Shown here one piece after another: positions 45,081 to 61,915 of a DNA stretch of 64,000 nucleotides. Position 1 is the stretch's first letter. Each line of letters opens with the position of its first letter. A model generated the notes under the pieces. That model did no database searches and had not been told where the DNA came from. It was given only the letters and a program-made list of their open reading frames with translations. This DNA comes from Adineta vaga (taxonomy: Eukaryota > Animalia > Rotifera): assembly GCA_021613535.1 (NCBI GenBank), contig CP075496.1, positions 11,470,001-11,534,000 on the forward strand. The letters run 5' to 3'. Made by a program: the position numbers and the translations under genes.

Positions 45081-46428
45081 TTATGAAGAGAAAAAATATA
45101 ATTGTTGAAAATGTGATTCATCTAAACCCATGAATTCAGGTGTATATTGATAGATAAGATATTTTAATTCATCTGCTAATGAATCGAAATGATTGGGATT
45201 TTGACGTGCTTGTGCAGAAAAGAAATTCGCTGTATATTGCATGACTTCGATAGCATCTTTTGAATGAGGAATAGTTGTATTCATTCGCCATTCAAATGCA
45301 TTTTTTTCCGGATGCCATTGAACACCAAAAATTGGATAACGACGACCTGTATATATAAAAATAAGATATGAATAAGGAGTTAAAACTTTAAATGATATGT
45401 ACTTTCGATAGTAGAAACAAATGTTCGATTTTCCAAATCATAACTTATTGTTAACATTTTATAGAAGTTTGACAAGACAGGATCAGCTGTAAAATTCTTG
45501 ATTAATAAAAATGAAAATGAAAATTTTCGATAGAAATTCGAGAACGTCGAATACTTACTTCTGGTCGCATACAAAAATCATGATAATTAGATGTAGTTGG
45601 CTTATTTAATAACGAATCTTTTACATTCGATGGTAAGGATGATCCTAACAATCGACTTTGGTTGGCTTCTATTCGTGATGAAAAATACAGATAAAAACTA
45701 GATTGTAATTTCATAGAATTAAAACCTTTCATGAAGATTAGTTCTGTAGCAAAATCATTTCCTTTACATGTATCTAATATATCTGTAGAATGTCTAGTTA
45801 ACATAAGTAATACTTCAAAACCGAGACATGTTCCCCAGATCGGAAAACTTTTTTGTGTTTGATCAAATGCCTAAAAAGAAAATTTATCATTTAGTTCAAA
45901 ATTCATATTTCAATTTACTTTCAATGACCAAGTATAAAACAGATTTGCCACGTAAAAATATTCATCAGTAAATTCACCACCAGGAAGTAATACTCTAAAC
46001 AACATAGAAATGAAATTTCTGTTGATTTTTAACTTTTTATTAATGAATAAACCCATTGAGTGAATTGAATAAATGTGAATAATATTCTATCGATTGATTC
46101 ATTCTTTAAGATTAAAAGAAAATTACTATTAGATTGTAATAAAAGATCATTTATCATCTCATACAAAACAGGTACAACTTGTGCGCCAGTAGCTTCAATA
46201 TATTTGACGTATGAAGCTGCGATATAAGCTGTACGATTGGGTTTTTGCCATGTCGATGGAACTGCTTGACTTAAAATACCTAAATTATATACATAATTAC
46301 ATCTGATTACTTGATTAATCTGATTGTTTACCAATAATTGGTCGAGTATTTTCATTCAATGAATAGGACAATACGTTGTCAATACCGGTTTGTGAGATAA
46401 GTAAAATTGCCAATACCAAATTGATCAT
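45081..46428 (-). CDS. GGH: Gamma-glutamyl hydrolase (peptidase C26), multi-exon
   Basis: Signal peptide, RPII|GILSQ, YIAASYVKYIEATGAQVVP, LLPGG, PIWGTCLGFE (catalytic Cys), GVQWHPEKNAFEW (catalytic His). Confidence 0.94.
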
Positions 46429-46626
46429 TGTTATTCAATCTAAAATCAAATTCAATCGTTTTTCTTGTTTTCTATTACAAATTTCCAATGAAAGCACTGA
46501 TTTTTCTGACAAGAGGATTGCAATTCTTTTCTTTTCTACTACTTATAAAAAACAAGATTAGAAATGACTACTGTTGTATCTTTCGATATTTAATCATTTG
46601 AATAGCAGAACCAGCATTAACATTGA

Positions 46627-48406
46627 TCAATAATAGATCTTGATTATTAATAATACACATCTGAAAGAGATTGAAAGATCTGTTCTAGCATCATGAGATA
46701 TATCCAATATTTTCTCCTTTACTTCTGTTTGATTTGTATAGAATGTTTTTTTTGCTATGTGTGTAGTTTCGTTTTGATCAATTGCAATAATCCAAAGAAT
46801 CTTTTCATCACTAAGAGCAAAGAAGATATTCGAATGTGAAAGACATTTCATTGAATAAATATTTAAACAATCATTTAAATCAATCGTATAACGTAATTCT
46901 AATGTATCAATATCGAATAGAAGTAATGATGTTTTCTTTGGAGTAATATATGGAAAACAGGAGATAAGTACATTATATTTGTCTGTAAATGCAATTAAAG
47001 TATTTGTACAACAAAATATCGGACTATTGATCTAAATATAAAAAAAGAACATTATGATATACTGAATTTCAATCTACGGGAAAAAAAACTCGTATCAAAT
47101 AGTTAACAAAAGTTAACGGATAACAAGTGATGATATTTCACTGTTGATTTAATATCTAAAGAATGACTAGGAAAGAAACAAATGTGTCTGATATCTTGTG
47201 ACTATCTAGATAACATTCTTTGTCTTATTGTAAATAGAAATTAGTTTTTTGTTTTGTATTATTTACTATACCGGTAATTGTTTGTTAGTTAAATTATCAA
47301 ATGTTTTTTCTCGATTGAATTGATAATCATAAATTTCAATTGAACTTGATTGTTGTTCAGTTATGTAAAGTAAAATATTACAATCATTACATGCAATTCG
47401 AGTCAGCTGAAGTTTTTTCAAAACAAGGACTTGATTGACAAGTATTGGATTCGTTCGTGAGGAACGATTATATTGAATAGTATATATCGAATGATGAGAT
47501 AGAGCAACATATCGATCAATAGATGAACACCTTAGAATAATATTGATAGTAATCTAATTTATTTGAAGAAAAAGATTTTACCATAGAATATCAATAATTG
47601 GTTCATATTTCCATTTTATATCTCCTTGAAATTGTCCAGTAACAAGAATAAAATGTAGAAAATGATTATGATTGTTATAGCAGAGAATTACATGTGAATT
47701 CGATGCAATTAAAGATATTTGAAAACGAGTATGAATTATATTGGCAAATTTCCAATATTTACCTATATCAATATTATTATTCAGATCATCTGTTGAACAG
47801 ACTGATAATGATGATGATGATGATATGCGTATTTCTGGTATGTGTGATGAAGTACTCATTTTGGATGAATGTCGATCAGAGATGATTGAGGATGGTGGAT
47901 CGAGTATATTTGATCTTGAGGGTTCTGGACACATTTCTTTCATTGATAGATTAAATGATTTGAAGCGAAAGCTAATTTGAACGAATTTGGAAAGATAGTT
48001 TTGTAATTTAACAAATAACAATTGTTCATTTGGTGGATCATCAGATGAAGATATACTTGATAATGTTTCATAGAAATCATTTTGTAATACTTGGATTTCT
48101 GTTAAAAGATAGTTTAAATGAATCTAAATAATTTCACATAAATCAGAGTTGCTACTACATATAGATACTTATTATTCCAGAAGAATCACTTACTTGTTGA
48201 TTTTGATAGTTAGTATGAAGTGTTGATAATTTTTGTTTATTACCAACTAAATGTGTAAAATGTAAACATTGATCAATACCAAATCGAGCTAATTTAGTCA
48301 AAAATTCACTGAGATAATCATGACTTATTGTATCATCACGTGAATATGATGTTAATATATCTGACATTTTCGAATAAATATAAAAATAATCTAAAAAATC
48401 TTTCAT
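46627..48406 (-). CDS. Helical N-terminus + beta-propeller-like protein, paralog family of 41192-42956; start uncertain (48406 or 48367)
   Basis: Exons join in frame. LIASNSHVILCY...IKWKYEPIIDILW|CSSIDRYVAL motif is shared with the two neighbouring family members. Confidence 0.6.
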
Positions 48407-48723
48407 AGAAAATTTCTAAAGAAGTAATATCCTGCCATATATCTATAGCTCATCAATATGTCTCTTCATTTCATTCATAGACATTATCACAATGCTCAAA
48501 GTTTGAAGACAACACAAAGCTATGCTAAACTTTATAGTTGATTAGATGTTGAACATGTCCTTGGTTTTACAGCGATGAAATAAAGAAAAATCTATATTTA
48601 ATTTCGCTTTGGTTTACTAACAAACTGTTCAAAACAAAAAAACAGAACAAAAAAAAGATCCTTCAAAAATTGTTCAAAACAAATAACAAAAAATATATAA
48701 GTTTATATATCTGCTATTATCTT

Positions 48724-50595
48724 CTATCTAATATTTCGGTATTGAAGTGTTTGAATCGAACATTCCGAACGTAAAATAAACACTTCATGATCATTAATCA
48801 TACATAAATGTTTGCCTTCATCTAATAATTTCTTTCGTATTAATTCATTTGTATCTATATTCACAAGAATTAATTGCATTGGTTCAGCAAGAATCATAAA
48901 GATATTTTTTCCATAACAACATTTAATATCATAAACATTTGAACAATGACGTAATGACATTTGTTGAATGCATATCATGGATTGTAAATCAAAAAAATAG
49001 ACTTGAACATTTTGTTCATTTTCCGTTTGATGAGGATTATTAATTGTTGAAAGAACTTCCGTTTTTTTCACAATAGCAAATAAAGTTTCATTCAAACAGA
49101 AACCATGAAAACCAAGAGGAAAAAAGTCATGTGAAGTATGATTATCATAATGACGTAAACGTTGACCAGATCGACGATCATATAAATCAATCGAAACATT
49201 TTGATGTTCAATCATATAAATATACCAACCAGTTGAATGACAAGATACTCGAACATGTTGAAATGTTAAACCGCGAAAACTAATTAATTTAGTTACTTGT
49301 GGTGAATGATCAGTTGTATATGGATTTGTATCATATGGATAACAGACAGAATAAAGACCTAAATTACCAACACTAAAATACAAAAAAACTAACATAGATA
49401 GACGAATAAAATAAATTCTGTATTTTACATCAGATAAAATTTACTCCATGAACACCATGTCATATCCCAAATTCGTGCATTATTTGCTGTTATTGGTGCT
49501 AGTAATCGATAAACTTTAATACTTGATAAATTCACACCTGAAACAGTTGAATAATTAAGAAAATTTCTTTCAATCACATAAGAAAGTATTGTACGTCCAT
49601 TTGAAGCAATCATATCACATGGATAAGTTAAAACAATACTTTGACCAAACTTAAAATGACTTAAATCTTGAACATTTAATACAGGATTACAAGTTTCATT
49701 CGTTGTTATAGTTGGTGATAGAACATCTGTATTTGTTGGCAAATTTTGTTCTGACATAGGTTGAGATGGTGATGATGGTGTTTGTGGTAAATTATAGGAT
49801 GCGATTGATGAAAATGATGCTGTTAAATAAGATGATAGATTATCTAGATCACGTGCAGGTGAAAGAACAAGTCGAGATAAACGTTCCATACATCGTTGTA
49901 ATTCAATTGAAAATGAATGAGATGTTTCCGATATGTTATTATTATTATACATATTACATTTTGTTCGTATGTATTGTACAGTATCGAGCATTTGTTGTAA
50001 TTCAATCTAAATTTCAAAATATCTATAAATCTAACTTTCTGTACATGGAAATCAATTGGAATGATCCATTTCTTCTGTCATTTTCATTATTGAATAATTC
50101 ATTGAATTACCATTACCTATTGCTCAATGATCTTATTCAATAGGTCAATTTATAATGGAGTTCTATCATAATAGTAATCTTGAACTGAGCCATATTCACT
50201 CAGATCAGTACTGCCATATCTTTCTTCTTTCCTTTCTTCGTTATACCAAATTTTAGGAGAAGATAACCAATATCTCTCTTTGTCTCTCTCTCTCTCAATT
50301 GTTTCTATTAAATAGATCTTTAACATACTTGAGCATTTAATGTTTGTTGTTCAATATCATTTCGACAAAATCGTCGAATCTCAATCAATTGTTCAAATAT
50401 TTTATTAAATGTTCGATTGATTGAATGATGTACATCATCTCGTTGAATTTCAAATAGTTTCTGTTTTTCAATGATATTTCGTTCCGACTGTTCAAGCAAA
50501 TCTTTTAAATCATTCATCGTTTCTTTTGGTGATGATAAACATAAACGACGTCTTGAAAAACTTGATAAAATCAATGAATTTTGATCTATTGACAT
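48724..50595 (-). CDS. Coiled coil + beta-propeller-like protein, same family, 3 exons
   Basis: Coiled-coil exon (DDVHHSINRTFNKIFEQLIEIRR), then MIASNGRTILSY...RIWDMTWCSWSKFYL and further beta-rich repeats. Confidence 0.65.
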
Positions 50596-50723
50596 TGATC
50601 TCAAATAGAGAGACAAAGAAGGAAAATGTAAGAAAAAGAAAATATTCTCAGTGTTTATTAAACAATTTACAAGCAAAGAAAAAAACCTAGACAAAGGTTG
50701 ACTCTACACATAGATTTTGATTT

Positions 50724-52689
50724 TTAGTTCAATGTTGAACGTGTTTTTTCTGAGAAACTTCTTTGTTCTTTTTCAACATAACATTTCATTAACAAGTCAA
50801 CATCAACAACTTGAACATGAATCATTTGAATATAATTAAATTTTGTTTCACGAGGTAAATCATCCATATTGGAAGTTTTCTCTTTTTTTATAGTCACACC
50901 TTTTTCACCTTTGACTCGTTTATGTCGAATCATTAAACGTCGACTTAGATAATCACCAATTAATGAAACACTTCCAATACATACATAAGCATTTGCACTT
51001 GGAAGAAATAATTCATAATCGAGTCTCATTGATTCATATGAACGTAATTTATCTGACGAACAATTTTGTATGCGAAATGGTAAACGAAATTTTTCATATA
51101 AATTATGCATTAAACGTGTTAATTCAACGAAAAGATCATCTAAACTTGATGTTTCTTTAAATCGATATGGTTTATTATCTTGTAAACTATTTTTTAATTG
51201 AAAATTATATTCATGTTCACGTTCAGTAGATACATTCGTTGGTGGAGGCTGTAAATCATTAATTGGTTCTTCAGTGAGAGGATCATCGAAATTTTTCAAA
51301 TGTACATCTCGTACAGTTGTCATTGCTAATAATTGAATTTTATGTGTTTGTTCTTGATTGACATCATAGGTTGCACCTTGTGTAAAGACATAATAAGGTA
51401 AATCAGAATCTAAAATTGTTCGACGAATAAAAGGAACAAGTATTGAAGCTAGAGAACCTAAACCAGATGTAATTAATGAACGTGAACGTGGCTCATCTGC
51501 ATTTTCAAATGTTGTTAAAACATGACGACTTTCATTAATATTTGCACCTAATGCTTCATATATAAATGGTTTGGTTATACTAACAGATGACATTTCTTGA
51601 AAACCTAATTTTGTTAATTCAGAACAAATGAAACGAACAAATTCATGTTTACGAGTGGGCACTGCGCCAAGCCAATACGATCCAAAAATGGATACATCAT
51701 TTTTTTCGACATGACATAATTCATTCCATGTTTTCGAATTAAATGCATGTTTAACAAATGGAATTGATGATTCATAGATAGTTATACCAGATGAGGGTTT
51801 AGCTGGTACAGCAATATGTTGAGCAGCTGGTAGATGTAAACAAGCAACGATAAAACGTTGATCAAATATACGAAAACGTTCACGAAATTGTTCGAAATGA
51901 TTTTTTAATGAATTAAATTCATTGTCATTCATAATCGCTTCACCACGAGCATAAGGAGAATCATTCGATAGTTTCGATGGATGTGCTATTGAATCGATCC
52001 AAGCATTATCAACACTAGATATTACTTCAGAAGCATGTTGAATTTCTCTATTAAATAAAAAAATACAGCGAAAATAAGAATATGTACACAAAAGATTCAT
52101 GTGGTAAACTTCAGAACTCAATATCAAAAGTTTCTTACTCGGTTTTCTCTGTTGTTAGGGTTGTTGTTTCTTCAGATGTTTCATTTGATTTCTTAGATTT
52201 TTTTCGTTTTTTCGTTTTATTTATAGCTATTTCATTGACATCTGTCATAGTTAAATCATTTGTCTGTTGTTGTTCACGTAATTTTTCTTGAATATGATGA
52301 AGATCACGTAAACGTCGATATTCTTTCTTTTCTCGTGACCATCGTTGATAATCGGATGCTAATTGATTGATATCGACCATAAGATTTCTTTGTTCACAAT
52401 TTTCTTTCAATAATTCAATATCACGAAACATTTTAATAAAATGTAAATCAGGTAAAACTTGTTTAGGATAATCAGTAGTATTTAATGGATAAAGAGCTAA
52501 ACGACAAGTAAATGAATCATATCAATCTCATGAAACAGAAATCATCTAACCTGAACGAATATGATCATTCGTTGATTTGACAGTAAATAGAAGAGTTTGA
52601 TTGGGAAATATATGTGAAGACGACGAAGATACACGAGAAGATATATGATATATCGTTCGTCGAAGAACGAAAATTTTTGATGAATACAT
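50724..52689 (-). CDS. SLIMP: Mitochondrial seryl-tRNA synthetase-like protein (SLIMP-type pseudo-synthetase)
   Basis: Arg/Ser-rich mitochondrial presequence, then SALY..LPDL, a coiled-coil arm and SerRS core remnants (DLPY, YESMRLDYELFLPS, GDYLSRRLMI). Class II motif 2 (FRxE) and motif 3 (GxxxxxxR) are lost. Confidence 0.75.
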
Positions 52690-52705
52690 CTGAAAGAGTA
52701 ACAAG
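52690..52705 (-). promoter_or_regulatory. Unpaired 3' splice acceptor directly before the SLIMP ATG (candidate SL trans-splice site)
   Basis: Minus strand reads cttgttactctttcag|ATG; only 70 bp separate it from the GTF3C2 stop. Confidence 0.55.
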
Positions 52706-52759
52706 ACAATCATTATGTATATATTTATATAACAATGAGAGAAATTGGAAGTGAAAATT

Positions 52760-55141
52760 CTATTTTATGGATTTATTTTCCTTTTCATAGATGTTCATAG
52801 CATGTGATGACCAGGATTGATTCAATGGAAGAATGAAAAGTAAACCAGATTCGCCACCAAATGCATACCAACCATATGAACCAAGATTAGGATTAAAACG
52901 TATCTAATTTACAAAAATAGATGTATGTTTCTTGTTCTTTTGTTTTTTTTCAAAAATATGATAGACACAATTACCTTATGTAAAGCATTTAAAGCATAAC
53001 TTCCAGCTTTAGTAAAATCATCTTGTTTACTGACAAATTTTTGCTAAAATTATTCAAAGATATTTAATTCGTCTGACATATACATATAATTACATCACAA
53101 GATAAATTGGTATCCAGATAATATTTATCAACTAGATTAGAATATGATGATTGTTCAAAAATTGGTTCACCAGTTTCATTATTATCTAAACAATTATGAA
53201 GAATACAATGTGGTCATCATCAAAACTTATCATTTTCAATTTGTTCTTACTTTTTGATATATCTTCTTGTTTATCTGACTTGAGAATTGCATTCATATTG
53301 AATAGTTTCTAAAAATTAAATATTGCTTTTCAAATCCAACATATTATCACTACTTACCAATCGATATTTCAATGAACATTCATTCTTTCTTGTCCATCGT
53401 ACAAAATTTGTTAGACGAAAGAAATAAACACAACCTGAACACAAAATTACATCACTACTTCAAAAGAACCATCTCGATCTTTACCATTCGTATCACAAAG
53501 TAAACTAGCGTCAAGCCATGGTGAATAATCTACACTTAGAACATGATCTGGTGTTGATTGAAAGTAAATATGTTTTGGCAGATTACTATTCTCTGGATCA
53601 TATGCAAGATAAGCGCTCATTCGAGCATATGATCTAAATCAACATAATTATTATTCATTCTTATAAGTTCTTGTTTTTTTCCATTGAACACTTACGGTGT
53701 GAATTCTTTTGCACATAAAAGATCGCCTGTTAATGTTCTTATGACTGATTCTGTACCACTATTTTCAATATCGATTAAATGCTGTTGACTATCATCAAAA
53801 TCCCATACACTGGAAAAAAGGAAAACGATACAAATCAGTCCGAAAACGAGAAACATTTAATGATGAATTTCCTACGAAAATCGTTTAGCAATGTTTGCAA
53901 TTGTTAAAACAAGATTGGATGAATTACTTAGGAATTTTATATCACGAATAGGTGTATAAGAAATTCGAATGAATCGAATGGGATAGATTATTTTTTCTTC
54001 ATTGGATTTCTATGAATAGAAGAAAAAGAAGAAGAAATTCGACATACGATTAACTAACAGAAGATATTTACCATTTCTATCAGATGTTTTACTTGTGTAT
54101 TAACATGAAAAAGAGCAATAAAACCATTACTATAACAAGAAACAAGACGATTTGGATCGTGAATAGACCAATCAATTGCTAAACATTGTGTTTGATTATT
54201 TGGTTCATTCAAAAGTAATCGAATTGATTTGGATGCTTTATAAAATGGATAAATTTTCTTGGATAACTGAGCTGATGATGATGCTGTTGTAATATGTTGA
54301 GAAAAGATTTTATATACATAAATTGCACCTGAACTTGTTCCAGCAGCTAAATATGCTGCTGGTGATGACATGTTGGTGACCATTTTAAACTCCATATAGC
54401 ACCACTATCATCAATCGGTATAAAACCGATTAATTCATGATTATTTGGTGATAAACTTGTTTTAATATTTGATAAATCGAACGTCCAGATTTGTATATAA
54501 TTTTTATATGAATAAGTTTCATCATAGAAATGTTTTGATATTAATGATGAACGTGAACAACCTATGGCAAGATATTGATGATTTATTGGACAATTTGTTG
54601 TTGGCATCGAAAGCCAATCGAGAGATTGTATTGGACCAATACCCATATTTAATGTAAATACATTCGTTTTATGTACAATTGATTCAAATGGTGAAAGAAT
54701 CAGAGGCGTATCCGAAGTCTATAGTATAAAATGAAAATAATTCTTATGAAATGAAATCTTTCACTTACATCCTGAGAGAGTTGAATGTGATAAGTATCAA
54801 GTAAAACTTGTTCGGACAATTTTTTATCATTAGTAAATTCAATTTTATTATCATGATCTAAATAATCGATTGTTAATTGTCGTTCTTGATTTCGATGTTG
54901 TAATTTCAAAGCAACACCAAATGCAATTTCATTCAATGTTAATGCATGTTCTAAAGAAATCAGTTTAAATTTTTATAACAATCAGAAGAATATTTACGTG
55001 GTACAGGTCCATTATCAATTGTATTTCGATAATTTCCCCAACTTTCTGTTTGATCTTTCGATAAAATAGCGATTGATTTTCGTTTTGCTGCTGATGATCG
55101 TCGATTTCGAGGTTCGATTTCTTCATCTGATTCATCACCTC

Positions 55142-55175
<34 letters not shown>

Positions 55176-55564
55176 ATCATTCTCATATTCATCTCCACTA
55201 CTAATCTCTTTATCTAGAATAACAAAAAGTAGCTCATCACTCTCTAACTTTCCAGTGTAACTTACATTTTTGCTTTACTTTCGCAGCTTTTCTTTGTTCA
55301 ACAACATTGCTATTCATTGTTAATAAATTTTCAATTTTTGGTTCAATTACTAACATTAGGAAAATCATTTGTAAGCAATTTTCTTGATCAAAGAAATCTT
55401 ACATTCATCTTTTGTTTCATTTGTCTGAATATTATCATTAGTTACAATTGGTGTTCTTGAAAAATGAAATATTAAAGAACAAAAAAAGAAAGATTTTCAT
55501 TTGGATTCTCTTTTCACACATACTTTCTCGGTCGACCTCTTCTTTTTGCTGCCGGTGGATTCAT
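52760..55564 (-). CDS. GTF3C2: General transcription factor IIIC subunit 2 (TFIIIC110, WD40)
   Basis: N-terminal AT-hook KRRGRPRK, acidic tract, GPIQSLDW, QYLAIG, IQIW, GAIWSLKW, and C-terminal LHK|IRFNPNLGSYGWYAFGGESG. Confidence 0.85.
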
Positions 55565-55683
55565 TTCCTTTCTTTTTTCAGTATAAAAATCTGAAAAGAC
55601 AACGTACGGACGGATTTTATTTTTATTTTGTTCAAAGCAAAACAAAAAAAGAATGAGAGGACGAGACTGAGATCATTTATATA

Positions 55684-58665
55684 TTAGCCGATTGTTAATA
55701 CAACACCTCGATGTATCAAATTTTCTTTAACATATTTTGTTAATGGAGAAGTTAAAACTTCAGCAAGAGTTGTATCAACAAATAATCGAGGTAAAACATC
55801 AATACATCCATCTTCTAATGGATTGATTAATATAGCAGCAATAATATCTTCTTGAGCACATTGAAGATCATCTGTAAGAAATTTAACACGCGATCTGGAG
55901 ACATAATATTTCGCAACGGATGGATTCACACTTATAGCTCTGGTTAACTCAGTAGCAGATTCCTTCGAAAGAAAAATAAACCATAATTCGACACGAAAGA
56001 AAAGAGAATATCAACAAACCAGATATCGTTTTTCTTTATATAATTGTTCAGCTTTATTAAAAAATACATTTGAAATACGTAATTTAATTTCATTATTATC
56101 TGGTGATAATTCCAATGCTTGTTCGTAATCTTGTAAAGCAAATGTTATTTGTCCTCTTGAAATGAAACAATCTATTGTAAGAGAAAGATTGATTATTTCT
56201 CCATTGATATGTTTGAATAGAGAATACAAACCTCCTCGATTAATATATAATCCAGCAGAGTTTTTTTCACTATTAATTGCTCGATTTAATAGATTAATTG
56301 CATCATCATAGAATCCTGTCTGTAAACATTTCAATGAACATTCATTATAAATAAAAACAAATTGTTTTTGTGCTTGTTGATAGAGTGAATTCTCTTCATT
56401 ATGTCCTGTTTTATCGAATAATAATAAACATTCGTCTGTTGCTAATTCGAATTTTCCCATTTTTCGATAGATAACACTTCTATACAGATGAAAATATTCA
56501 TTTAGCAATGAAGAGAAAATAAATGATCTATGAAATATGCACCTTTGTAAATGAAATTCAGCTTCGATAGGATATAAATCAAGGGCAAGATTTATCGCTG
56601 AAAGTGCATTAGTTAAATGCTCATTAATTGACATACGTATGGAATTATCTCGAGCATTTTTTGCAGCTTCTTCAAGTGCAGTCATCATACGAATAGCCAT
56701 TGGATGATGTTCGTCGATCGTAAGAGCATCACGCACATCATAAAAGCAAAGTGGGAGCTAAAATGATAAAAAAACTGAGGTGATATCGTGAGAATAAAAC
56801 CATCTGTTCATTAAAGTTTAAAAAGGTACTGATTCCGAATCAAAAAACACATTCCCGAAAATCGAAAACATGAAACTTCTTCTTATCGTTTTGATTACTG
56901 CTCAAATCTATGGGGCACTTTGCACTAGTGCTCCTCTTACAGAACAACGTGGTCTCATGGATATTTGGGATTTTCTTAGTCCAGCAGTTATGCCCGTTGC
57001 TCTAGGTATTGATAATGCTATGGCTACAGTTTCAAATATTCATAATTCTGTTTCAAATGCTATTTCTGGGGCTGTTCATGGTGTTACATCATGGATTGGT
57101 GGTATACTTCCTCCACTTGGTAAACGTGATGTAGAAGTTGATATTCGTGTGAATCTTTTATCTGAACTTAAATCATTTCAATTCGGTCTTCAACAAACAT
57201 TCTTGGAACTTGTTCAAGCTATCTTAAATGGAAAACTTGCTATTCAATTTCGACAAATCATTGCTAAATTTAGCGCTTTCCTCAAAACACATTTAAATAC
57301 CATCAATAATATGATTACTAATTTAATTCCTACAATTGAAAATGTAGTAGGAACTCAAGCTATTAGCAGTTGTTTAAATGCTGTTCAAGTTATTGAAGAA
57401 GCTATCAAGAAAATTCAAGCTCTTTTTTCTTTGTAAAACTTTACAAATGAAATAAATATCAAACCTTTGCTTTATCTTTGTAATATAATCGAGCACGAAT
57501 AATCAACAAATCAGCATTATCACTATAGTCTTCAATCATTTGATTGATTAATGCAATTGCTTCATCTATTTTATCCAAAGCCGTCAAACATAGAACACTA
57601 AAAAGAATTTCTTTTATACAAAGATGATTCTATAGAAAGATACCTATAAACTTGAAATGGAAATGTACTAAATACATCAGCACCAGTTGCAATGATACTT
57701 AATGCATCGATATAAAGTTTTTGATCAAATAATGATATACCAGACATATAACGAAGAAAAGCGATTTTATCATTGGTTAATTTTTCTTCATTTGAAAGTG
57801 GTACAGGACGTGCAGGGATTATTAATTGTTGTGATTGTTGTTTTTGACTGGTAACTTGTTTATATGAAATACCTTTTTGTAAACTTAAAATTGAACTTTG
57901 AAAATCACATAGATTCAAATAGATTTCTGAACGCATTTCATAAAGTGGAATATGATATGGTTTTAATAGAAGACATTTATTAATATATACTAATGCTAAT
58001 TCATAATTTGTACGTTTTTCTAAGAGTTCCACTGCTTTTTCGTAACTGTAATATATCGAAAAGAAAATGACATGAAGTTCTTTGGAAATCTATTAACTTA
58101 CAATTCACCACAATGACTATCAGTTACACCTTTCAATGCATCTCGTAAACCTGCTCCTAAATTACATAGAAAAACAACCTTTAAAAGTAAGACATTCAAA
58201 TAAAATATACCTTTTGACCAACCACCTGGTAAAAACGTTTCGATAGCATATCGTTCGTAAACTTCAGCATCAATTTCAGTTGAAAATACATCTTCCTAAA
58301 CAAGTCATTAACGTCATCAAGCAATGTTACTTAATACAAAAGAGATATTGTGTCAAACACTCGAACACACTTAGTGAAGAAGAAGATCTAAGAATCACTC
58401 ACAATTTCTTTTTCTTTTTTATTTTCTTCACTACAAATGATTTGAAATAAACTTCGAATAAATTCTACTTTATTCTTCTTAACTATTACCTAGTTGGTTG
58501 TTGCCAAACATATGCAGTTAATTGTCGATGAGCACTCTCCTGTTGTGTACGTGCATCATCAAAGCTAAGAAAATGTTGACGTGAAGCACCAGCACGAACA
58601 CTAACAATGCCAAGGGATCTTGGTAAATCACTTGGATTTCGTGAAATATCATATTTATCAACCAT
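55684..58665 (-). CDS. TTC16: Tetratricopeptide repeat protein 16-like
   Basis: Multiple TPRs; LYEMRSEIYLNLCDFQSSI, GLYINRG|DCF, FALQDYEQALELSP, NPSVAKYYVSRSR. Exons joined in frame from ATG 58665. Confidence 0.8.
56870..57436 (+). CDS. Nested intronless secreted prepro-protein (188 aa) inside TTC16 intron 56758-57464
   Basis: Signal peptide MKLLLIVLITAQIYGALC, EQR|GL and GKR processing sites, amphipathic helices, host-like codon usage, AATAAA at 57451. Confidence 0.82.
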   Translation: MKLLLIVLITAQIYGALCTSAPLTEQRGLMDIWDFLSPAVMPVALGIDNAMATVSNIHNSVSNAISGAVHGVTSWIGGILPPLGKRDVEVDIRVNLLSELKSFQFGLQQTFLELVQAILNGKLAIQFRQIIAKFSAFLKTHLNTINNMITNLIPTIENVVGTQAISSCLNAVQVIEEAIKKIQALFSL

Positions 58666-59097
58666 AATTGCTTATTATTTATATTCTACAATAAAGATTA
58701 TTGCTTAAGAATGGGATGTTTTTTTTTTAAATAAAGATTTTCTTTAACAAATAAATAAATAATTTTATTAAATAAGATTTTCATTGAAATACAACAATCA
58801 AAACGAACAAAACAACATATGAATTAATTCATAAAATAATTTCCATGATCACAACAAAGAAAATCGAATATATTTACAAAACAACAATTGATAACGAAAG
58901 CGAAAAACAAAAATAAAATAGATAAATAGAATGATTTGTTTAACTTTGAAGATATTGTTTTGTTTTGTTTTGACTTGACGAGAAAATATCAAATAAATAC
59001 GTAGATTTTGTTATCTTTATTTTACTAGATGAAGATCTTGTATATATTTCATAAATGGAATTCAATTTAACATCTGACAAACAGCCATGGTTTGTTT

Positions 59098-60872
59098 TTA
59101 TTGAGATTTAATTATATTTTGTTCTTCTAAACGTTTTAATTCTTGTAAAACTGGAATATTTATCATCATATCTGGTTCTAATATATTCCAATAAATACGT
59201 GTTGGTCGTTGAAATAAACGTTTTGTATAAATATATCGTTTTGGTGTAACAATAATATCAACAGGTAAATCATGTTGTTCCATAATATGATTTGGTATAT
59301 CATTAACTAATTGACTTTCATGACATGTAGTAATAACAATAGTTTTATTTGATACACAACCCATTTGAGACATAATTGCGTATTCTAAATCAGCATAACC
59401 TTTACCTTTACCAATCCGAGCACCGGTTATAGGATTGACAACTACGGATGAGATGACAACCATGTCAACATGAATTTGTTTTAATGCTTGTAATTGTATA
59501 ACAGTACCTAATTCAGCTACACCAGTCTTTGTTGCTGCCCATTCAATTTGATTTCGACGTAGAAATTTCGGTTCTAATTTATAAAATAAAGCTGAATCTA
59601 AATTAGAAGTATTGAAGTAAGATTTTTATTTCATCAGAATTGAATTGTACGAACCAAGTGATGGTGTTGGAGTTAGAAGAACTTTATTATACGCTAATGC
59701 TAAATAGCGAAGAGGTTCCTGAGCAAGTGATGGATTAATTTTAATAACTCGTGCTCGTTTGAAACATTCTAAACTCGTGACATTTTCTGCAGCGATTTCA
59801 CAATAACGAAAATTTGGTATACGACCATGTGCTGGACGTGGAAAACGTACTTCATTTCTATGCAAAAACAAAATCATAATAATGTTGATGATTTGTTTCT
59901 TAGTTTTCTCTCGAATACTCACTTCATTTCCATTAAATCCCAAACAAGTTGTCGAGCACGTGCTTTGAATAATTTGATATTTGTACTTGCCATTAGAATT
60001 GATTCTGATTTTGTTGGTTTTAATTCTATTGTTTTTGGTTCATTTCGTTGTTTTATCCAAAGATTCATTTTTACAAGAACTTCCGAAATATTTTTACTTT
60101 TCAATGTATTATTGCAAGTTATTAAACCATCGACTATATCTCCAATACAAATCCATTCATGAATATATTGTCGATGTTGATGACGCATTTTATGAGCATA
60201 TTTTGTTGGTGTACATTTAATATCATTGTTTGTTTCAGTATCATTCACGGAAGTTTTTACTGTTGATTCTTCGTATGTTAATAAATTGGAATAACCAATT
60301 GCATTACAAACAACAGAAGAATTGTAATCAACGTCAAGAGCGCAAACTGAAGAGGAAATTGATCAAATCATTTGTTGTCGAATAGTTTAGTAGGACTTAC
60401 CACATAGATCAGATGCTGCACCAGTTGAATAAAACATACAACGATGTTTAAAATCTAATCGTTGTTCGATCATTGTCAAAAGTGGATCATTCGAAATTGT
60501 ATTTCCTGATGTTGATGAACAAGAGAATGCACGTCGACAAGAACCTTCTTCTGGAATTGGTGATAAACTAATCTCTGTTGTTGTTGAACCAGTTGATGTT
60601 GAAGTTACAGCTGTTTGTTTTATCATGGTTGGTCGATCAATATCAAGTAAACCGCAAAGAAAATCAGATGAATAAATTATATCACATACAGTTCTTTGGG
60701 AACCATGTTTAGATATTTCAACTTCATATGGAGATAAAAAATACCGATCTTTTTTACGAATAAAATTATAATAGAGTAAAAAATGTGGAAATTCTTCAAT
60801 CATTGTCACCGGAAAAAACATTAGCTTCATCTTCAGTTGATCTTCAGATCTTTTTGACTTGTATTTTTTCAC
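59098..60872 (-). CDS. MTHFSD: Methenyltetrahydrofolate synthetase domain-containing protein with long N-terminal extension; true start uncertain
   Basis: KARARQLVWDLME, FPRPAHGRIPNF, IKINPSLAQ, GARIGKGKGYADLEYA, TTCHESQ, HDLPVDIIVTP. The upstream exon 60395-60875 splices in frame. Confidence 0.85.
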
Positions 60873-61915
60873 ATCTAAAAATCGACAAAAGATATTCTAC
60901 TATCTTTTCTTCGCATAAAAATAAAATGTAGAAACAAAAACATACAAAACAGGAAGATAAAGAGAAAGAATCAATGATAAAATGTTTCTAATCGACAAAC
61001 GAATTCCGTGTCATCCATGTATCGAACAATTCAAATCTAAAATAAAACATTTAAAAACTAAATTTTTTCTTCGAAATTTCATTCAATATCTGATGATTTT
61101 CAGATGTGAACAAAAAAATCAAATTGACTAGGATCACGAATGTGTTTTTATTAAATATATGTATGTATATAATGATAGAAGACGGAAAAAATTCTGATCA
61201 TGGAAAGTACAGGGTTTACAAATAAAATTAATCATAAAATAAAATCAAACTAAATACATGACATGACGAATGTTTAATTACGGAAAATATAGAGAATATC
61301 TGTGCGTCAAAATGGAAAAAAAGAAAAGAAAAGAAAAGAAGTTGAAAGCAAAATATTTAAGGAATTATTTTCTCTTGAAAAAGTAACATCAGTGATTATA
61401 TACCACAGATGTTTGTATGTTTCTATGTCAATATAGAAATAAAGATAAAGATTTCTAGAAAAACAACATAAATTATTGTAGAGATGAAATGCAAAAAAAA
61501 GAAACAAATGACAATTGCTATGCACATACAATGACTGTTTTCGAGAGGGAAGAAGAGCAGTAAGAGGAAGAAAACTGGCACATACACAATCTACACAATT
61601 CTTTTAATGAAATATCTAGAATAAATGAAATATCGGGAGGAAAGCAAACTACGAATTTTTTTCTCGCATTTCTTTTCTTTTTGTTTGATTTGTAGAAATA
61701 ATCACTATTGATTATGATGCTCATTACCGGAATAGAAACAGACAGTAGTTAGACATGAAAGAAAGAAGCTGTGCAATAGTCAATATTGAATAAACATAGG
61801 TGTAATGAATTGCATGAAAATGAAACAAATAGTAAAGAAAAAAATCGAGCTTTTAAATACACGGAAAGAAAAGACAATATCAAAGACGACAAAATATAAT
61901 ATGCTAAATAAAATA

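Follow-up and report, generated by a model that had tools for sequence, protein, structure and literature searches.

Spliced-leader trans-splicing at a conserved gene junction and a candidate tunicate-style operon in Adineta vaga, a bdelloid rotifer

A row of genes on the minus strand of the bdelloid rotifer Adineta vaga, in the order MTHFSD, TTC16, GTF3C2-like, SLIMP-like, CC1, CC2 and GGH, lies in a window of 64,000 nucleotides (nt) of contig CP075496.1 (assembly GCA_021613535.1, positions 11,470,001 to 11,534,000; positions below are those of the window). All seven genes, MTHFSD included, have a conserved AG/A splice acceptor ahead of the start (the slash marks the splice point here and below). 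At one of these predicted sites, which is conserved and abuts the start codon of SLIMP, RNA assemblies provide direct proof of spliced-leader (SL) trans-splicing. The evidence for a tunicate-style operon core is circumstantial but good, and we consider it probable that at least TTC16, GTF3C2 and SLIMP, and probably also CC1, form one polycistronic unit resolved by the SL.

RNA at the three tight junctions

The genome assembly is chromosome-level (100.8 Mb in 6 pieces; GC about 29%) and the introns of the locus are 47-91 nt long. RNA contigs from four runs of four studies (X1, X6, X12 and X15) were aligned to positions 50400-56399 (6000 nt), which include the acceptors at 55591, 52690 and 50600; the acceptors at 60875, 58686, 48391 and 46440 are predicted from the sequence. 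The four runs are RNA assemblies, with 15 GT..AG minus-strand introns spliced out. The features of the central part of the row are listed below; the AATAAA signals and, together with the Adineta ricciae locus, CC1 are placed from the sequence.

55684-58665, minus strand: TTC16-like TPR gene; TPR Pfam matches, introns backed by RNA joints
55616-55627, minus strand: TTC16 AATAAA signals, two overlapping in series
55591-55592, minus strand: GTF3C2 acceptor AG, cttttcag/ATT, 26 nt before the ATG and 14 nt past the TTC16 3' end
52760-55564, minus strand: GTF3C2-like gene; 12 introns backed by RNA joints
52690-52691, minus strand: SLIMP SL trans-splice acceptor AG, tttcag/ATG, abutting the start codon
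50724-52689, minus strand: SLIMP-like gene, 606 amino acids (aa), a divergent seryl-tRNA synthetase paralogue; introns backed by RNA
50654-50659, minus strand: SLIMP AATAAA
50600-50601, minus strand: CC1 acceptor AG, tttgag/AT, 4 nt before the CC1 ATG
48724-50595, minus strand: CC1, coiled-coil and propeller-like

The gaps from stop codon to ATG are 432 nt (MTHFSD-TTC16), 119 nt (TTC16-GTF3C2), 70 nt (GTF3C2-SLIMP) and 128 nt (SLIMP-CC1), exactly the values given in a first-pass annotation of the window.

In X12 and X15 the SLIMP contigs (1938 and 1842 nt) span the whole gene, end at 52691 and carry 9 and 10 letters beyond it, the loose ends CTTGGTAAG(T). These loose ends are the reverse complement of the 3' part of the SL, ...ACTTACCAAG, i.e. 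(A)CTTACCAAG. With the AG shared by leader and genome, the 5' junction of the SLIMP message reads ...ACTTACCAAGAG/ATG, in which the SL is fused directly to ATG 52689; the 12 leader letters visible (ACTTACCAAGAG) are those of the common SL form. The SLIMP contig of X1 stops at exactly 52691, the point at which SL and genome diverge. SL trans-splicing at the SLIMP acceptor is thus directly observed in two studies, at the very tttcag/ATG for which it had been predicted.

The 23-nt rotifer SL (PMC3795323, Table 1) matches the genome at 59 places, whereas its reversed control gives 0 matches. Copies in the genome read TGCTTATT... and the exon ends at a GAG/GTAAAT donor; together with the SL on RNA contigs, this shows that SL RNA genes and SL trans-splicing are present in this organism. 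Bdelloid trans-splicing was established by Pouchkina-Stantcheva and Tunnacliffe (2005), as cited in PMC3795323. The SL RNA genes are often arranged as head-to-head pairs with SL exons starting 154 bp apart (e.g. L001:1497-1680), are clustered on contigs C5 and C6, and include several variants that differ at SL position 10 or 13. SL addition is also RNA-verified at another gene, on contig C6 at about 7.335 Mb (L023:61, ctctttag/ATTCATTC), an independent example of SL at an AG/AT acceptor.

A TTC16 RNA contig (X6 record 17) ends at 55605 with 4 unaligned letters; this end lies 14 nt short of the GTF3C2 acceptor and 11-17 nt past the two AATAAA signals. Two further contigs, X1 record 3 (3445 nt) and X12 record 7 (3503 nt), carry both genes and are unbroken over 55524-55961; they cross the 119-nt TTC16-GTF3C2 gap with the acceptor unspliced and with introns removed on both sides. 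Genomic DNA contamination does not explain these crossing contigs because the same runs leave stretches of the locus uncovered (50603-50714 and 52692-52853 in X1, 50603-50617 in X12; recomputed depth bins). At the next junction, the GTF3C2 contig X12 record 6 runs through the full 70-nt gap as far as 52689, with 3 letters beyond, and stops at the SLIMP acceptor. For SLIMP, the X12 contig reaches 50618, which is 36 nt past the SLIMP AATAAA and 16 nt before the 'gag' of the CC1 acceptor. From RNA 3' end to acceptor, the three tight junctions therefore measure 14, about 0 and 16 nt, and these contig ends are presumably polyadenylated. No contig in the four RNA runs crosses GTF3C2-SLIMP or SLIMP-CC1. 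In X1 and X12 alike, CC1 contigs stop exactly at 50602, where 'gag', also the end of the SL, begins; this is indirect evidence of branching between an SL-joined and an unspliced form in the assembly graph. The GTF3C2 and CC1 acceptors would also be used by the SL. Judged by their pyrimidines, the three acceptors at 55591, 52690 and 50600 match the 14 RNA-verified cis acceptors of the region, and an acceptor as good as each of them occurs in about 5-6% of random 45-nt windows.

Several RNA contigs proved to be misleading. A plus-strand SL-bearing loose end at 53290, present in three runs, looked like antisense trans-spliced RNA inside GTF3C2; its string is not genomic, and the contig is the misplaced SL-spliced 5' end of the C6 gene described above, which has 21 identical bases in common with positions 53290-53310. 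The 255-letter loose ends at 56079 and 55450, considered as paralogues or alternative 5' exons, are unrelated C6 contigs with 18 common bases. Given these misplacements, short aligned pieces in the RNA table need care. An uninterrupted 609-aa SLIMP on the environmental contig L015, taken for an RNA contig, proved to be genomic DNA that has lost one intron. RNA contigs of other bdelloids were not found: the metagenome scan and the members of the SLIMP protein cluster were all genome-derived.

Conservation of the junctions across bdelloids

The junctions were compared with those of A. ricciae, Rotaria socialis, a JGI environmental contig and three ENA metagenome contigs, with two further JGI contigs used for SLIMP-CC1 only, and were placed by exon-wise tblastn. 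A. ricciae and R. socialis share the gene order, as do five or six contigs of environmental bdelloids, and it takes in a nested antisense gene, a downstream antisense gene and a serpin. Synteny across rotifers was a check suggested in the first-pass annotation. Across 7-9 bdelloid genomes, from Adineta, Rotaria and environmental samples, the row retains its order, its tiny gaps and its acceptors. The ranges at the three tight junctions are:

TTC16-GTF3C2: stop to AG 78-112 nt; AATAAA ends 22-46 nt before AG/ATT; AG to ATG 14-31 nt
GTF3C2-SLIMP: stop to AG 39-80 nt; YAG/ATGTAT; AG to ATG 0 nt
SLIMP-CC1: stop to AG mostly 56-134 nt; AATAAA 30-69 nt before AG; AG to ATG mostly 4-24 nt

AATAAA and YYYYAG/ATT are present at TTC16-GTF3C2 in 6/6 genomes compared, and YAG/ATGTAT at the SLIMP start in 7/7, while neither AATAAA nor ATTAAA occurs at GTF3C2-SLIMP in any of the 7 genomes. 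The unusual TTTGAG/AT ahead of CC1 is kept in A. ricciae, L019, L020, L026 and L027. No insertion or rearrangement was seen at TTC16-GTF3C2 (6 genomes) or GTF3C2-SLIMP (7 genomes). Elsewhere in the row, CC2-GGH is 1492 nt in A. ricciae, CC1-CC2 varies from 95 to 825 nt across genomes, CC2 is missing from the environmental bdelloid L015, and the neighbour upstream of MTHFSD is different in L018 and L019. Unlike gene order, the invariance of the two tightest junctions is the specific signal in these comparisons.

One R. socialis assembly has a 776-nt insertion in the 3' untranslated region (UTR) of SLIMP (L012:12815-13590) that is absent from three others; it lies upstream of the AATAAA, leaving the AATAAA-acceptor unit intact. 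In Rotaria, the NCBI models P0036, P0037, P0039, P0052, P0053 and P0056 (950-1478 aa) fuse SLIMP with its neighbours, one example of 1070 aa being about SLIMP plus CC1. Such a fusion is an annotation error of a kind typical of operons or of evidence from read-through RNA.

The wider gene row and its neighbours

The outer genes of the row, their acceptors and a nested opposite-strand gene are as follows:

60875-60876, minus strand: MTHFSD acceptor AG, ttttag, followed directly by an ATG-stop mini upstream open reading frame (uORF)
59098-60830, minus strand: MTHFSD-like gene, possible first cistron; start ATG 60830, stop TAA 59100-59098, Pfam 5-FTHF_cyc-lig
58686-58687, minus strand: TTC16 acceptor AG, ttgtag/A, 20 nt before the TTC16 ATG
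56870-57436, plus strand: nested opposite-strand gene, 188 aa, an open reading frame (ORF) inside a TTC16 intron, outside the operon
48391-48392, minus strand: CC2 acceptor AG, ttttag/ATT, 23 nt before the conserved ATG 48367
46568-48367, minus strand: CC2, CC1 paralogue; TAG 46570-46568 closes a short last exon
46440-46441, minus strand: GGH acceptor AG, ttttag/ATT, 11 nt before the GGH ATG 46428
45081-46428, minus strand: gamma-glutamyl hydrolase (GGH) gene; Peptidase_C26/GATase on the A. ricciae orthologue

Protein searches were made exon by exon, or with the SLIMP-like database protein P0001. The gene names of the first-pass annotation are plausible. P0001 matches seryl-tRNA synthetases, and the 606-aa SLIMP-like protein is identical to the NCBI entry 'hypothetical protein I4U23_020843 [Adineta vaga]'. 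Human GTF3C2 is the sole PDB match of one GTF3C2-like exon (E 0.034). CC1 and CC2 (46568-50595) are tandem paralogues with a coiled-coil-like N-terminal part; three of their exons were scanned without a Pfam match, and one CC1 exon is beta-propeller-like, with a DCAF17-like lead at 0.90 only. No second (ohnologous) copy of the SLIMP, GTF3C2 or TTC16 exons was found in the same genome. RNA contigs of three studies have one added base at 54369 (+G, plus strand), where a GTF3C2-like exon of the reference is frameshifted by 1 nt and the ORFs 54347-54646 and 54054-54395 overlap out of frame; an error of the assembly or a broken allele is the probable cause.

A dynamin gene lies about 1.1 kb upstream of MTHFSD, and a dynamin domain is found on the orthologous A. 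ricciae locus. The MTHFSD start also needed correction: ATG 60874 is followed directly by TGA, and the start common to 5 bdelloid genomes is ATG 60830. The ATG-TGA at 60869-60876 (minus strand) instead forms a start-stop uORF directly after the MTHFSD acceptor, which reads ATG-TGA or ATG-TAA in 5/5 bdelloid genomes (A. vaga, A. ricciae, L018, L019 and L020) and lies 45-65 nt ahead of the main ATG across the genomes compared. This conserved minimal uORF is a possible translational control element. The TTC16 acceptor is conserved as TGTAG/A or TTCTAG/A in A. ricciae, R. socialis, L018 and L019, and a conserved AATAAA block about 75 nt before it hints that the true MTHFSD-TTC16 spacer may be short.

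Of the six junctions described in the first-pass annotation, two were wrong in detail. The AGs that it placed at 58686, 55591, 52690, 48416 and 46440 are all present, as is the tttgag at 50600; the conserved CC2 acceptor is the AG at 48392-48391, not that at 48416 (or 48406). The CC1-CC2 gap, given as about 320 nt, is 356 nt when measured to the conserved CC2 start (ATG 48367, MSD...), and the CC2-GGH gap, given as 198 nt, is 139 nt from the stop codon of the last short CC2 exon. All the genes that it named do lie on the minus strand; the plus-strand gene at 56870-57436 was overlooked. The latter has kept its position in A. ricciae, in R. socialis and in environmental bdelloids; in the annotations of the two named species, TTC16 appears as two genes, one on either side of it. 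No acceptor-like site precedes its ATG, and a promoter of its own probably lies within about 110 nt.

Proposed transcription unit, rival explanations and known systems

In the favoured reading, RNA polymerase II would begin upstream of TTC16, if not already of MTHFSD, and transcribe the row, so that one promoter would serve several genes. Each downstream 5' end would come from the 23-nt rotifer SL, trans-spliced onto the conserved AG. A spacer of no more than 14-16 nt would place the trans-splicing branch point inside the 3' UTR of the upstream message. Making the upstream end first would destroy the downstream substrate; one precursor may therefore give the upstream or the downstream mRNA but not both, and by analogy with the proposal for Ciona such mutually exclusive processing of adjoining messages is likely. 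With upstream RNA ending 0-16 nt short of the next acceptor, transcription of the upstream gene must bring that acceptor with it, and no space is left for an intergenic promoter. The first-pass annotation had held polycistrony to be strongest for TTC16-GTF3C2-SLIMP, and the SL on SLIMP, the RNA end at 55605, the two-gene contigs and the conservation all agree with that choice; the shared transcription unit itself is deduced from them.

Several points weigh against this reading. The end of GTF3C2 at the acceptor is seen in one contig of one run, the X15 and X1 contigs ending at about 52748 and 52854, and to take the 3 extra letters of X12 record 6 for poly(A) is a guess. Among the loose ends listed, no SL letters occur at the GTF3C2 or CC1 acceptors, though the assembler may clip tips. 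The contigs are short-read assemblies, and a two-gene contig shows RNA over the junction, not one two-gene molecule. The whole neighbourhood is syntenic, opposite-strand genes included, so that gene order alone is not operon-specific. Finally, the genome is compact, a promoter can fit within about 110 nt, as at the nested gene, and promoters inside upstream genes are conceivable.

This last point leads to the most serious rival, in which the genes are overlapping independent units with their own promoters inside upstream genes, short outrons are removed by monocistronic SL trans-splicing, and the spacing reflects compaction. We regard it as a possibility, though a distinctly less likely one. 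Monocistronic genes, too, receive the same SL in Ciona and Oikopleura, so an SL acceptor alone is no sign of an operon (PMC7986045), and the RNA that crosses TTC16-GTF3C2 could be an outron-bearing GTF3C2 precursor started inside TTC16. The contig depth of X6 is 48.5 for TTC16 versus 2-22 for the downstream genes, a measure that cannot rank genes. Independent units fit less well with upstream messages that end 0-16 nt before the acceptor, as polymerase normally passes well beyond the poly(A) site (an argument made for Ciona, PMC1488885), or with a GTF3C2-SLIMP spacing that stays at 39-80 nt in 7 genomes as the looser junctions shift; nor is there an alternative 5' exon at the downstream acceptors among the joints listed.

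That the acceptors belong to cis-spliced introns in 5' UTRs, with first exons further upstream, is very improbable: the SLIMP acceptor is joined to the SL in two studies, and no cis joint ends at 55591, 52690 or 50600 among those listed. Chance or artefact is less credible still. Pyrimidine-AG strings are common in DNA of 29% GC (depending on the threshold, 5-30% of random 45-nt windows contain a pyrimidine-rich AG), SL letters could come from misplaced contigs, and the loose end at 53290 was truly misplaced, from another chromosome. The SL letters of SLIMP, however, sit on contigs of 1.8-1.9 kb aligned along the whole gene, and the acceptors are at the same place in 6-9 genomes in which intergenic DNA has otherwise diverged; the RNA contigs and the cross-genome comparison of acceptors thus largely refute this explanation.

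A stronger version of the polycistronic reading holds that bdelloid operons lack intercistronic DNA and that one cut serves two messages, trans-splicing itself creating a polyadenylated end without a canonical AAUAAA, conserved across Bdelloidea. We consider this doubtful; if true, it would be a third independent animal origin of coupled 3'-end formation and trans-splicing, the earlier two being those of tunicates and of the SL1-type operons of nematodes.

No account of operons in rotifers was found in the literature searched. A 2008 review lists rotifer operons as 'ND' (PMC2481426), and a 2025 paper names rotifers, with no data, among lineages with 'trans-splicing and operonic transcription' (PMC12460157). 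The work on SL trans-splicing in bdelloids, with the same 23-nt SL and genomic copies that end in GAG, covered trans-splicing and not operons. If the operon is real, one more phylum joins the short list of animals with operons, and it bears on whether operons arise wherever SL trans-splicing meets genome compaction. It would also offer a second animal group in which to study an mRNA 3' end and a trans-splice site on the same few bases, and it is relevant to annotation, Rotaria gene models already merging SLIMP and its neighbours.

The proposed bdelloid unit would be a further case of a type of SL-resolved operon already known in other animals. In nematode operons of the SL2 type, downstream genes receive a specialised SL and follow a spacer of about 100 nt that includes a U-rich element. 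The rotifer row does not match this type, having spacers of 0-16 nt and, on SLIMP, the common SL form; no sign of an SL reserved for operons was seen. Closer are the operons of Ciona and the SL1-type operons of Caenorhabditis elegans, in which, as at GTF3C2-SLIMP, the upstream RNA ends at the acceptor AG (here a contig ending ...cagA plus 3 letters) and a canonical AATAAA is lacking (7/7 genomes here). The likeness extends to a single visible SL type, a trans-spliced downstream cistron, unrelated housekeeping genes and essentially no intercistronic DNA, the last also seen in Oikopleura. At the Ciona boundary the upstream poly(A) tail comes right after '...AG', mostly in the absence of AATAAA (Satou et al. 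2006, PMC1488885). The rotifer differs in belonging to another phylum, in its unrelated SL sequence, and in the AATAAA and 14-16 nt spacer of TTC16-GTF3C2 and SLIMP-CC1. In those spacers, as well as in its one SL, compact genome and short introns, it resembles Oikopleura dioica, whose intercistronic regions are 23-30 nt (PMC1488885, PMC7986045), with a median distance of about 30 bp versus 1 bp in Ciona (PMC7986045). Upstream cistrons of Oikopleura are reported without AATAAA, whereas in the rotifer it is conserved at 2/3 tight junctions. GTF3C2-SLIMP fits the Ciona type of junction, and TTC16-GTF3C2 and SLIMP-CC1 look more Oikopleura-like, but with AATAAA.

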